A stretch of DNA of 63,510 nucleotides, the filler included, from Reticulomyxa filosa (taxonomy: Eukaryota; Protista; Foraminifera): assembly GCA_000512085.1 (NCBI GenBank). It is 23 parts of 23 records of this genome, joined end to end, with 100 filler letters (N's around TTAATTAATTAA, not from the genome) between each part and the next. Parts side by side here need not be neighbours in the genome. Positions count along the whole stretch, not along the records: positions 4,025 to 6,459 come from ASPP01048210.1; 22 more parts are not named here. One strand, written 5' to 3'. Positions 4,025 through 9,209 of this stretch are shown piece by piece. Made by a program: the position numbers and the translations under genes. A model generated the notes under the pieces. The model worked only from the letters and a program-made list of their open reading frames with translations. It did not search any database and had not been told where the DNA came from. Every line of letters starts with the position of its first letter. Positions within the stretch are counted from its first letter, which is position 1.

Positions 4025-4090
4025 TTTTTTTAAAAATTAAATCGGGGTTATTCAAAACCCCGAAACCCGTCCAGCGAAAAAAAAAAAAAA

Positions 4091-6261
4091 GTTATGATTT
4101 ATTATTATTATGATATTATTGTTGACGATAGGGTTTTTATTATCTACAGAACATGGACTCCAAACCCTCGTTGGCGCACAACGGGTCCCCAAACGTACCT
4201 ACGGAAGAAAAAGTTTGGCTTTGTTATTTTATTATCATAGATTATTTTTAAAACGGAGCCTTCATTATTCTATAGAACAAGGCCTCCGTACAACAACCAC
4301 CGCACAAAGCAAACATGGGTTCTCAAAGTCCCACAAACAAAAAAGTTTGCTTTATTATTTTTATTATCTATCATTAATAATATTATTATTACTATAACCA
4401 CAGTGGGGTTTTTATCATTTTATAGATCATGGCCTCCAAACCCCCATTGAAAGCAACAGCGGGTCACCATACCTGCCAACACAAAAGTTGCGCTTTATTA
4501 TTGATATTATCATACATTATTATTAACACGAAGTTTTTATTATTTTATAGACCAAGGCCTCGGGACACACCAGCAACCAACACGGGTTCCCGGAACGCGC
4601 CAAAAAAAAAAGTTTTGCTTTGTTGTCTTTATTTTTTATTAATTATAGCAGCGGAGTTTGGTTAAATTATAGAATCTGGCATTGGAAACACCATTGCCAA
4701 GCAACGACGTGTTCCCAACACGTTTCCACCAACAAACAAGTTTTGCTTTGTTATCATTTTTTTTATACCATTATTATAGCGGGGTTTTGATTATTTTATA
4801 CAGCAACGGCCGAACTCCACTCCGCACCCAATCAAAATGGGATCACACAAGTGCCCAAACAAAAAAAAAAAGTTTTGCTTTGTTGTTATTGTTTATTATA
4901 ATAATAATTATATGGGGTTTTATTATATATAGAATACCGGCCTAGGAACCTCGTTGCAAGCAACAGCGTGTTCCCAACACGTCCACACCAAAAAAAAGTT
5001 TTGCTTTGTTATTATTTTTTTTTATAACATCATTACCAATTATTATAGCGGGGTTGTGATTGTTTTATACAGCAACGGCCTCCGAGCTCTCCATCCCATC
5101 CCCCCAGACAATGGGCTCGCATACATGCCCATCCAAAAAAAAGTTTCGCTTTATTATTATTACCATTATAATGTATGATTGTCCCAACAGAGGTTTTATT
5201 ATTATAGATTATGGCATCCGAGCACGTGCGTGCAAGCAACTACGGGTTCCCAAAATGTGCCCGCAAAAAAAAAGTTTGCTTTATTGTTGTTATTTATTAT
5301 TATTATGATGACCATAAATATAGAAGAGTTTTGATCTATTACAGAACGCTGGTCTCGCACCCTCATTGCAAGCATCCACGTGTTCTCAATACATGCCACC
5401 ATCCAAAAGTTTTGCTTTATTATTTTTTTATACTATAATTACTAACTATTATAGCGGGATTGTGATTGTTTTATAGACCACGGCATCCGAGCTCTTCCCA
5501 ACGCATTCGAGCAACGATGGGTTCGCACACATGCCCATTCAAAAAAAAAGTTTCGCTTTATTATTATTACCATTAATAAAACATATGTTGTGACAATAAC
5601 ACATTATATTTTATAGATTGTAGCATCCGAGCACATGCGTGCAAGTAACGATGGGTTCCCAGAATATGCCAGCAAAAAAAAAGTTTGCTTTATTGTTGTT
5701 ATTTATTATTATGATGATAATCATAACTATAGCGGGGTTTTAATGTATTACAGAACGTTGGCATCATAACCCTAATTGCGAGCACACACGTGCTCACAAT
5801 ACATGCCACTCCATCCCAAAAGTTTTGCTTTGTTATTGTTTTATTATGAGTATTATTATTATTGTGGTGGTATTTTTATTGTTTTATAGACCATGGCCTC
5901 CAAACTCCACCTTCCAAGCGCAATGGGTCCACACAAGTGCCCAAACAAAAAAAGTTTTGCTATGTTGTTGTTATTTATTATAATGATAATTATATCGAGG
6001 TTTTGTTGTATTGTAGAATAATGGCACCAACGTGTTCACAACACGTTCAATCACAAAAAAGTTTTGCTTTGTTATTATTTATATTATTCTACTCAATAAT
6101 TATTATAGGGGGTTTATTGTATTATATAGTGACGGCCTCCGAACACGTTTCCGTAATGACTACGGATTAACAACACGTGTTCTAATAAAAAAAGTTAGGT
6201 TGTTTTTTGTTGATTGGAAAAAAAATTTATATAAATAAACAAATAATATTTAATTAAACAG
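4091..6261 (+). repeat. Diverged tandem array of 16 units of about 130 bp, each an AT-rich GT...AG intron-like spacer plus a GC-richer exon-like cassette
   Basis: Recurring consensus AAAA|GTTTTGCTTT-(TAT-rich)-GCGGGGTTTT-TTATAG|AnnAYGGCmTCC...GCAA...GGGTTCCC...GCC-A(n). Cassettes: 4150-4212, 4276-4344, 4426-4486, 4551-4611, 4673-4739, 4804-4871, 4933-4997, 5073-5142, 5208-5273, 5345-5408, 5477-5549, 5617-5682, 5754-5821, 5890-5953, 6017-6060, 6130-6193. Confidence 0.92.
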
Positions 6262-9209
6262 ATACCAAGGTGGACGAAAAGGATGTGGCATACATAATAA
6301 AAAAATTTGTGCACCATAATGCTGCAAACAAAGGGGCGCAGTGGAAACACAACAATACTACACACACTACCCAAACCACCATACACAAGTCATAACACCC
6401 CCACCCCAGACATGATACTGCCACACCACATCCATACTAACCCCAAACAACAAACATGTNNNNNNNNNNNNNNNNNNNNNNNNNNNNNNNNNNNNNNNNN
6501 NNNTTAATTAATTAANNNNNNNNNNNNNNNNNNNNNNNNNNNNNNNNNNNNNNNNNNNNTTTTTTTAGTTTACAATTATAATTACTGTTGTTTGATTTTG
6601 AGTGACTACTTTTTTTGATTGTGCATTTGTTGTCGATTGTTTTGATTTAATCAACCTTCATTTGTTGAGTGTCCATGATCACCCTTATTGTTGTGTGCTT
6701 ATTTTAATTACTAATATCTCTTTTTGTAAAGAGCACTTTTTCATAATCAATGTTTTTAATAATACTTTTTTATCGCGTGCCAAGAAATTCCTGTTAGTCG
6801 CGTGTCAAAGACTTGCTGCTGATCGCATATGAAAAACTTGCTGTTTTATTGCTTGTGAAGAACTTTCTATTTTTGTGCGAAGAAGTTGTGTTTGTTATCA
6901 GTCCCCTTTTTTTTGTCGTGTGTTGAGCTTTTGTCATTCTTTTTTATCATTTTCTGATCAAATGTCTATCTTTTTTGTTGGAAAGTGCTCTTTACTTTTA
7001 ATCAAATCAATTGAGAATATTTGAAAAAAGACAACTGGATAGTCTACATATATCTATCTTTATCAAATGCATATACTCTAATTGCGAAGCAGTAGAAATT
7101 TGTGTACCATTGAATAAGTGCGTTCTTGATAATTGGATTTCAAACCTTTTCAATCTGAAATGAGATTGTCTTATGTAAAATGATTCGGACGTAACGTTTG
7201 GTTCAAAAAGAGAGACGTCCTAGTTTTCTCTTATCCTAGACACAAGGAGAGAATCGAGTTGTAACTTTAAAAATAGTTCAGAGATAAGCATGCAGCACTC
7301 TTTTCCATTCGAAGGATAAGTTTTTTTTTGCACACTAAAAAAGAAAAAGGAACACGTATTTACACATAAAAAATCTGTACTGTTCTGATCACAAATATCA
7401 TACAGAATTAATATCAACAAATCAAAATTCAGTCAAATATATCACATTTGTGAGGTGTGAATCAAAGGAATTAAGAATCATAAGACTTATTTTGACAGTA
7501 TAAAATGCTGTTATGAAAAAAATGTCTTATATTTGTTGATTTCTTCATTTTGAGAAAGGATAAAGAGTACAAAAGTTTATTTGTTGAACGGGCTTGTCAC
7601 AAAAATACAAAACCAAGTTAAATAATAAAAGAATAGACAAAAAATATGCATATAAACGTATTGTTATGTCGTTTTCACGAACTGAAAATTGTAATTTATT
7701 TGTCAGTGTACATTATTCAAATTTGAAAGGGATAATGATAGAATAAAAATTAGTTTTCCATTAGATATCTAAACCTGTTATTACCTTAAGAATCTTTACT
7801 AAAAAATATTTTGTATATATTGATGTAGGAGATCTACAGTATATTGCAAAGAAAACTGAACGCATAAAACGATATCTTNNNNNNNNNNNNNNNNNNNNNN
7901 NNNNNNNNNNNNNNNNNNNNNNTTAATTAATTAANNNNNNNNNNNNNNNNNNNNNNNNNNNNNNNNNNNNNNNNNNNNTTCATGAAGAAAATCAATCATC
8001 TCTATAAGGTGCCATTTTAGGTGTCAACTTTACTTTGCATTCTACTGTATAATTATATCAAGTGATGTAAAAGCATACTGTAAAATATGATATCTGGAAG
8101 AATATATTTGCTTTGTATAATTTCGATAATACAATTAATTGAATTTAGGACAATTTAATTTTTTTGTTTTGATATTCATCCAATTTAATTGACAATAAGA
8201 ACACAATAAACGAGGTTTCAGATTGGCCTCTTATTCAATACTCTCTGTCTAAGATAAGTCGTAATAATCAAGAAATTGGAATTATTCTAAACAAAAAAAC
8301 TTTATATCCAGTTTTTCATGTTTTCGAAAAGAAAAATTGATTAAAATTATTCTCAACAAGATGCACATTTAAAATATTTGAAAGTCGATGTAGTGTTGTA
8401 CGCAATTCATAATTTGCTCATTATGTCATTGTGGAAACAAATCAAGATTGAACACAAATATTTCTTCATAGCTCGACAGCTTTCAATATATTTTTAAAAA
8501 TAAACTACTAATTTGCTCTTTATTTGTAAAAAAAAACTTTCCAATTATTCAATGAATAATTTTGACAACTATGAGTTATTTCAATAGATAAAAATATTTT
8601 TGTTAATGTGGTCATTTCTGAGACGTATTAATATATATTTATTTAAAAATAAAAGAATTGAATGTGCTATGTTAAATGAATTTTGTAGTTTATCACGTCA
8701 AAATTGAATATCAATCTTTGAACTCAATTTTGAATAATTATTTGATATAATAAATATGTTCATGAAATGTCAAATGAAAACTTATCAACTCTGTTGTCAT
8801 GATCAAAATGCATTTTTTCATTATGTAATTATAGAATTTTCGTTTCTTTAAATGCTTTAGACTAAGTTGAATATTATATTGTTAAATAACTTAACATATT
8901 TATCAAAGTCACAAATTTGTCCCCTTTTAATAATATTCTTACATTGTTCCATCTACAATGATTCACAATTGGTTTGAGTAAATTTTTATAAAGGATCAAT
9001 ATAATTCATCTCAAATTACATTTATTGATTAAAAAAACTGTACTTACTTTGTAGTTTGCCTTTCAATGGTAATAACAATGTTTCAAATTTTTTAATAATA
9101 TTCTGCGTTCTTCGAAGCAGAAAAGATTTATATCATGAATTACTACAAGATAATCGTGATCGATTCTGACCAAAAAAAACTTAATACTTGAAATATCTTG
9201 CAACTTATT

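Follow-up and report, generated by a model that had tools for sequence, protein, structure and literature searches.

The tandem array at positions 4091-6193 of the window (63,510 nucleotides of Reticulomyxa filosa DNA) is probably a non-coding minisatellite in which conserved junction boxes are combined with higher-order repeats, and its origin may lie in an exon-plus-intron module; we hold this reading with modest confidence. By size the repeat most likely belongs to the range from minisatellite to satellite, and its unit, of about 132 bp, is present in at least 16 copies. The analysis covered the piece at 4025-6459 (2.4 kb), and within it the array has the features of a tandem repeat, namely head-to-tail copies of one unit and the absence of protein-coding constraint.

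According to this model, the array would have grown by unequal exchange or slippage of single units and of two- and three-unit blocks, and the copies would later have diverged to 60-70% identity, most of all at the array edges. The GT and AG dinucleotides, which give the units the look of exons and introns, would be mere parts of two conserved junction boxes, AAAAGTTTYGCTTTRTT and TAYAG, and something else than splicing may have preserved these boxes; examples are protein binding, recombination and homogenisation, as described for boxes of other satellites. If, as is possible, the unit goes back to an exon-plus-intron module in a gene that once existed, its exon/intron look would need no present splicing.

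Layout and divergence of the array

The array consists of 16 head-to-tail units of 107-145 bp each, all read on the + strand and alignable over their whole length. Each unit of about 132 bases is made of a T-rich spacer, which starts with GTT and ends with TAG or CAG, and an A/C-rich cassette with an A-run of 2-12 bases at its end. Unit 1 (4091-4212) has its spacer at 4091-4149 (GTTATG...ACAG) and a 63-nt cassette at 4150-4212, and is followed by unit 2 (4213-4344; spacer 4213-4275) with a 69-nt cassette at 4276-4344. The longest spacer (81 nt, 4345-4425) is that of unit 3 (4345-4486), whose cassette (4426-4486) is 61 nt long, as is the cassette at 4551-4611 of unit 4 (4487-4611; spacer 4487-4550). 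Unit 5 (4612-4739; spacer 4612-4672) has a 67-nt cassette with two strong hairpins at 4673-4739. The spacer of unit 6 (4740-4871) runs from 4740 to 4803 and ends with TATACAG, the AG being 2 nt downstream of the usual site, and precedes a 68-nt cassette at 4804-4871. Unit 7 (4872-4997) is made of a spacer at 4872-4932 and a 65-nt cassette at 4933-4997.

A three-unit higher-order copy opens with unit 8 (4998-5142; spacer 4998-5072; cassette 5073-5142, 70 nt) and continues through unit 9 (5143-5273; spacer 5143-5207; cassette 5208-5273, 66 nt) and unit 10 (5274-5408; spacer 5274-5344; cassette 5345-5408, 64 nt). Its partner is formed by unit 11 (5409-5549; spacer 5409-5476; cassette 5477-5549, 73 nt), which pairs with unit 8, unit 12 (5550-5682; spacer 5550-5616; cassette 5617-5682, 66 nt), which pairs with unit 9, and unit 13 (5683-5821; spacer 5683-5753; cassette 5754-5821, 68 nt), which pairs with unit 10 and carries an 11-bp hairpin at 5775-5800. 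The remaining units are unit 14 (5822-5953; spacer 5822-5889; cassette 5890-5953, 64 nt), unit 15 (5954-6060; spacer 5954-6016), whose cassette at 6017-6060 has lost about 20 nt internally and measures only 44 nt, and unit 16 (6061-6193; spacer 6061-6129), whose 64-nt cassette at 6130-6193 is the most decayed. The next GTT is at 6194.

All 16 cassette lengths given in the preliminary description were reproduced when the boundaries were set after AG and before GTT. Every cassette is preceded by TAG (11 units) or CAG (5 units) and followed by A/GTT (16/16, with the slash marking the boundary), as had been stated, and the three peptides quoted there are the frame-0 translations of cassettes 9, 12 and 11. 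Because the lengths, the flanking trinucleotides and the peptides all match exactly, the observation of the array is confirmed. The spacers, described as AT-rich and about 60-80 nt long, measured 59-81 nt with a GC content of 18-26%.

The two halves of the unit differ sharply in composition. The spacers have 22% GC overall (T 51%, A 26%, G 15%, C 8%), while the cassettes, which are 44-73 nt long, have a GC content of 0.36-0.56 and 48% overall (A 37%, C 32%, G 16.5%, T 15%). A comparison of the spacer with the cassette, and with the reverse complement of the cassette, indicated that the two halves are unrelated to each other.

Tandem Repeats Finder reported only higher-order periods of 260 and 409 with about 80% identity and no period of 132, because single units are merely 60-70% alike. 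Two blocks reach about 80% similarity, a two-unit block (units 5-6 with 7-8) and a three-unit block (units 8-9-10 with 11-12-13), and the pairing of units 8-9-10 with 11-12-13 was found both by pairwise identity and in the unit tree. The spacers and the cassettes drift at about the same rate, and the spacers are at least as conserved as the cassettes. Mean pairwise identity was 69% for spacers and 62% for cassettes, and the paired units had spacer and cassette identities of 83% and 77% (units 8 and 11), 77% and 86% (units 9 and 12) and 87% and 78% (units 10 and 13). It is thus not the case that the cassettes drift against fixed spacers.

The nearest relative of a spacer is not always that of the adjoining cassette. 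The spacer of unit 7 is closest to that of unit 15 (84%) and its cassette to that of unit 5 (76%), and unit 6 has a spacer closest to unit 8 and a cassette closest to unit 14. These differing partners (4612-6193) suggest exchange between units at the junction boxes.

Junction boxes and the case for splicing

To describe the spacer ends, logos were anchored on the spacer boundaries at 17 sites, with the terminal spacer at 6194-6261 included. On the donor side, positions -4, -2, -1, +1, +2, +3, +8, +12 and +15 were identical at 17/17 sites and positions -3 and +18 at 16/17, and this conserved element forms the box AAAAGTTTYGCTTTRTT, that is, an AAAA/GTT core with fixed Ts. The box at the donor junction can also be written AAAAGTTTYGCTTT, and that at the acceptor junction is TAYAG. 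The GT lies within the conserved AAAA/GTT box among equally fixed neighbours and is therefore not singled out. On the acceptor side, AG was present at 17/17 sites, T at -5 and A at -4 at 16/17, and most other nearby positions agreed at 7-14 of the 17. Units 6 and 8 have TATAC where TATAG is usual, and a replacement AG is found 2 nt downstream, as if an AG were needed there.

The unit tree has a total length of 4.2 substitutions per site. At this length only 1.5% of columns would be expected to be invariant under equal rates, whereas 15 of the 108 columns were, grouped in the donor box (columns 1-19) and TAYAG apart from three that lie in the cassette. This clustering indicates that the two junctions between the compositional halves are really slow-evolving; the slow boxes do not single out splicing as the cause. 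The earlier statement that splice-signal dinucleotides are kept in every unit holds, given GT...AG in 17/17 spacers and spacer ends that are the slowest-evolving parts of the unit. In a comparison with the adjacent positions, AG is better kept than its neighbours (17/17, with neighbours mostly at 7-14/17) and GT is not, being equalled by positions -4, -2, -1, +3, +8, +12 and +15. A GT no more conserved than its surroundings is the outcome that had been named beforehand as speaking for a plain minisatellite.

It is possible, though in our judgement unlikely, that the + strand is transcribed and the spacers are spliced out, giving either a non-coding RNA with many exons or a remnant, still spliced, of a decaying one-exon-per-repeat gene, with selection or simple inheritance keeping the splice signals while the cassettes drift. 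All 17 spacers pass the test of GT...AG termini, they are U-rich and of intron-like length, and their TAG or CAG follows a U-rich tract. Their ends are the slowest-evolving sites, and the AG relocated by 2 nt in units 6 and 8 would be in keeping with a need for an acceptor. The left flank has a donor and no acceptor, like a first exon, and the short stretch after the last CAG, with AATAAA at about 6297, resembles a last exon.

The donors argue against such splicing. The usual U2-type donor is approximately GTRAGT, with a purine at +3 in nearly all eukaryotes. Here T occupies +3 in 17/17 spacers and G at +5 is found in 4/17 (units 2, 3, 10 and 13) and missing from 13/17, so the spacers fail the GTRAGT test (purine at +3, G at +5); the first six bases are GTTTTG in eight units and GTTTCG in two. 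Conservation also extends from the AAAA before GT to at least +15, well beyond what a donor needs, and in about half of the spacers a second TATAG is present about 22 nt upstream of the supposed acceptor, the terminal TAYAG. All spacers have a U-rich tract, and the branch-like motifs in them are indistinguishable from chance in sequence of 78% A/T. The selection on splicing that had been proposed earlier is accordingly not established, in view of the off-consensus donors, a GT no better kept than its neighbours and the equal drift of the two halves.

In the spacers of units 5, 6, 8, 10, 11, 13 and 16 (4650-6110) the second TATAG is followed by CGGGG, which indicates a short internal duplication in the 3' part of the spacer.

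Donors of the GUUU type are canonical in at least one lineage, Entamoeba, whose introns start with GUUUGU in 88-89.5% of cases and with GUUUGN in 97-98.5% and have 76-83% A/U (10.1101/2022.06.08.495308). The spacers of the array resemble those introns in their GUUU start, their 78% A/U and their similarly short length, but only 4/17 of them have G at +5 and so fit GUUUGN, against 97-98.5% in Entamoeba. A more specific version of the spliced reading, that the locus is transcribed and 16-17 spacers are removed by a spliceosome accepting AAA/GUUUYG donors, yielding one long non-coding RNA or several RNAs that differ in the cassettes included, with selection acting on the splice signals alone, seems to us distinctly improbable. 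If it were correct, the host lineage would have a transformed donor recognition beyond that of Entamoeba, and if the spacers are truly spliced by whatever rule, the locus would be a rare repeat array kept only for its splice signals, and the host would be expected to recognise donors in an unusual way.

Several features also sit uneasily with a plain repeat. The U-richness of the spacer is confined to one strand (T 51%, A 26%), its length of 59-81 nt is intron-like, GT...AG lies exactly where the composition switches, and a U-rich tract precedes TAG or CAG. The AG is kept in 17/17 amid varying neighbours and was shifted by 2 nt in units 6 and 8. The chance that two conserved boxes would spell GT...AG in the right order is about 5%, a rough estimate made by inference and not by computation.

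The interpretation as a non-coding minisatellite with junction boxes has counterparts among known satellites. Another conserved satellite box is the CENP-B box of alpha satellite. In Meloidogyne (nematode) satellites, conserved boxes at the monomer junctions occur together with higher-order repeats (PMC3694981). The array shares with satellites of this kind non-coding tandem units of 100-170 bp, the coexistence of simple with two- and three-unit periodicities, and monomers that are strongly diverged yet carry short fixed motifs at their junctions; the mosaic spacer and cassette partners, suggestive of exchange between units, are a further likeness. Unlike them, its unit falls into halves of sharply different composition, and the boxes at the ends of the T-rich half spell GT...AG. 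Should the array be an ordinary tandem repeat, 16 false exons would be called here by gene predictors and by eye alike, and the checks that expose them are the donor consensus, the conservation beside GT and AG, the equal drift of the halves and the number of stops expected from composition.

Coding potential and RNA structure

By all tests run, the array encodes no protein. The reading frame is not conserved, as the preliminary description had reported: cassette lengths fall into all three classes modulo 3 (0, 0, 1, 1, 1, 2, 2, 1, 0, 1, 1, 0, 2, 1, 2 and 1 for cassettes 1 to 16), and homologous cassettes are in different frames. Not only A-run length but also internal indels distinguish homologous cassettes, and when the cassettes are read as joined, unit 9 has offset 2 and its homologue unit 12 offset 0, and unit 8 has offset 0 and its homologue unit 11 offset 1. 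The joined cassettes were modelled for stop counts only, and the database searches took the cassettes singly.

It was also considered whether the array is a repeat-protein gene with one exon per repeat, its frame broken only by mis-called homopolymer A-runs, and we regard this as very unlikely. The three joined frames contain 6, 1 and 6 stops, and joined frame 1 has its single stop in cassette 3, followed by 292 open codons to the end of cassette 16. The A-runs of 2-12 bases are error-prone in long-read assemblies, and several cassettes begin with ACCATGGCC or a similar sequence. Against this, internal indels besides the A-runs shift the frames of homologous cassettes, and a frame with at most one stop arose in 30% of trials in which each A-run was changed by -1, 0 or +1. 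The cassettes contain 13 stop triplets, compared with 17.9 ± 2.9 in dinucleotide shuffles (P=0.07), a count close enough to the expectation for the openness to be explained by the T-poor composition; 6 of the 13 are in the cassette of unit 16, over the three + frames. The cassettes are not more conserved than the spacers, G makes up just 16.5% of their bases, and between units 9 and 12, the best-matching cassettes, only one of the nine differing positions is synonymous in the frame used in the preliminary description.

Database searches gave no support for a protein either. No family was found by Pfam for five single cassettes and five ORFs, and DUF6708, which came nearest with E=0.15, was far from passing the cut-off. 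The 102-aa read-through ORF had no protein relatives in a word search, and six ATG-started ORFs were absent from the protein collection.

The idea of a library of alternative coding mini-exons is contradicted by the lengths modulo 3 and by the different frames of homologous cassettes. In schistosome micro-exon genes and Dscam clusters, exons are symmetric (divisible by 3) or of equal phase, and any choice among them keeps the frame. The array is like those systems in having many short exon-like segments separated by intron-like spacers, and unlike them in that its cassette lengths are 0, 1 or 2 modulo 3 in no order.

Genes with iterated, near-identical introns do exist and would be a precedent for a spliced array, as in the Flag and MaSp2 spider silk genes, in which modules were duplicated with their introns (PMC3522626). 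As in the silk genes, the exon-like and intron-like parts were duplicated together many times, and the introns are as similar as the exons or more so. The silk exons, however, keep one frame and a recognisable repetitive peptide and the silk introns have normal splice signals, whereas the array maintains no common frame and its donors depart from the consensus.

In its ancestral form the start of the cassette resembles the context of a start codon (ACCATGGCC), and the ATG is retained in 5/16 cassettes, those starting at 4150, 4426, 5208, 5890 and 6017. On sequence grounds, such a start would fit descent from a first coding exon duplicated with its intron.

Strong hairpins were predicted in cassettes 5, 13 and 16 and a weaker one in cassette 15, with z of -1.9 to -4.2. 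An alternative is that the units are small structured RNA genes or hairpin elements; each cassette would then be transcribed into an RNA of about 65 nt, a TATA-like element of its own (TATTATAG) would lie some 22 nt upstream, and a T-run would follow its A-run. We give this the lowest probability of all the explanations weighed. In addition to the hairpins, TATTATAG or a similar sequence lies upstream of about half of the cassettes, and GTTTTG follows the A-run in eight units. The mean z over the 16 cassettes was nevertheless only -0.75 ± 0.40 (dinucleotide shuffles, A-run trimmed) and not significant, RNAalifold returned 0 pairs and no common structure for the cassettes, and several units have a T-run of only 3 bases. 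Between the two subfamilies the right arms of the hairpins are non-homologous, falling in different alignment columns, so there is no true covariation. The candidate of hairpins with compensatory changes in all cassettes was rejected by the trimmed dinucleotide shuffles and RNAalifold.

Over the piece, Rfam gave no match better than E=0.05 and no rRNA within the 2.4 kb, and ARAGORN found no tRNA. The sole snoRNA-like match was on the minus strand with 21.9 bits (gathering score 37) and E=3.4, and no conserved C or D box was seen by eye in the alignment of the spacers, results that speak against a snoRNA host gene with C/D or H/ACA snoRNAs in its introns.

Near-perfect palindromes with an ACGT core occur in one cassette subfamily (units 5, 13, 15 and 16, and weakly in 7 and 10). 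Examples are ACGTGTT with AACACGT, the 11-bp stem at 5775-5800 and an 8-bp stem in unit 15. The palindromic cassettes are those at 4673-4739, 5754-5821, 6017-6060 and 6130-6193, and other cassettes are without them. The palindromes could be CACGTG-type binding sites or products of template switching.

Relatives, rejected identities and flanks

A scan with a two-unit pattern picked out 79 stretches of metagenome contigs and 76 of prokaryote genome contigs, and blastn of the piece against all 155 loci gave only one 44-nt chance match. Two more specific patterns had no match in viral contigs, nor did blastn against plasmids and phages, and none of the known satellites in the collections searched was similar in sequence.

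Four known kinds of element were considered and set aside. Spliced-leader RNA genes and Paramecium-type eliminated sequences (with TAYAG ends) were both poor fits when compared by eye with the sequence and the unit alignment. tRNA-derived SINEs were rejected as no tRNA was found, and Entamoeba rDNA episome repeats as there are no ScaI or PvuI sites.

Sub-repeat arrays of ribosomal DNA intergenic spacers often have 10-20 copies of 100-150-bp units and assemble as short separate contigs. The array is typical of them, or of another regulatory spacer, in its unit size and copy number, in being non-coding and in its place on a short isolated piece; there is, however, no rRNA or other landmark in the 2.4 kb and no link to rDNA, and we consider this origin highly improbable.

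Decay is strongest at the edges of the array, as seen in the aberrant start of the spacer of unit 1, the loss of about 20 nt from unit 15 and the stop-rich cassette of unit 16. The similarity of the flanks to the units was not significant on either side. The left flank, or degenerate unit 0 (4025-4090, + strand), has an AT-rich start, followed by a hairpin with a perfect 8-bp stem (4042-4049 with 4056-4063, TCGGGGTT and AACCCCGA) and a 6-nt loop. An A14 run at 4077-4090 directly abuts the first GTT, and no AG is found upstream. The stretch at 4042-4090 resembles a diverged cassette without a preceding AG. As the piece starts 17 nt upstream of 4042, the array may be cut by the contig edge at its left.

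On the right, the terminal AT-rich spacer (6194-6261, + strand; GTTAGG...AACAG) agrees with its earlier description as GT...CAG without the repeat sequence, and its similarity to the other spacers was not significant. The stretch at 6262-6306 was rejected as a degenerate 17th cassette, as its similarity was not significant. The right flank (6262-6459, + strand) contains AATAAA near 6297; from about 6340 up to the edge of the piece it is very rich in A and C and poor in G. At 6340-6459 it contains runs such as ACACCCCCACCCCAGACA and CCACACCACATCC, with no repeat unit detected, and in composition it is reminiscent of degenerate telomere-associated DNA (C-rich strand) or simple-sequence DNA.
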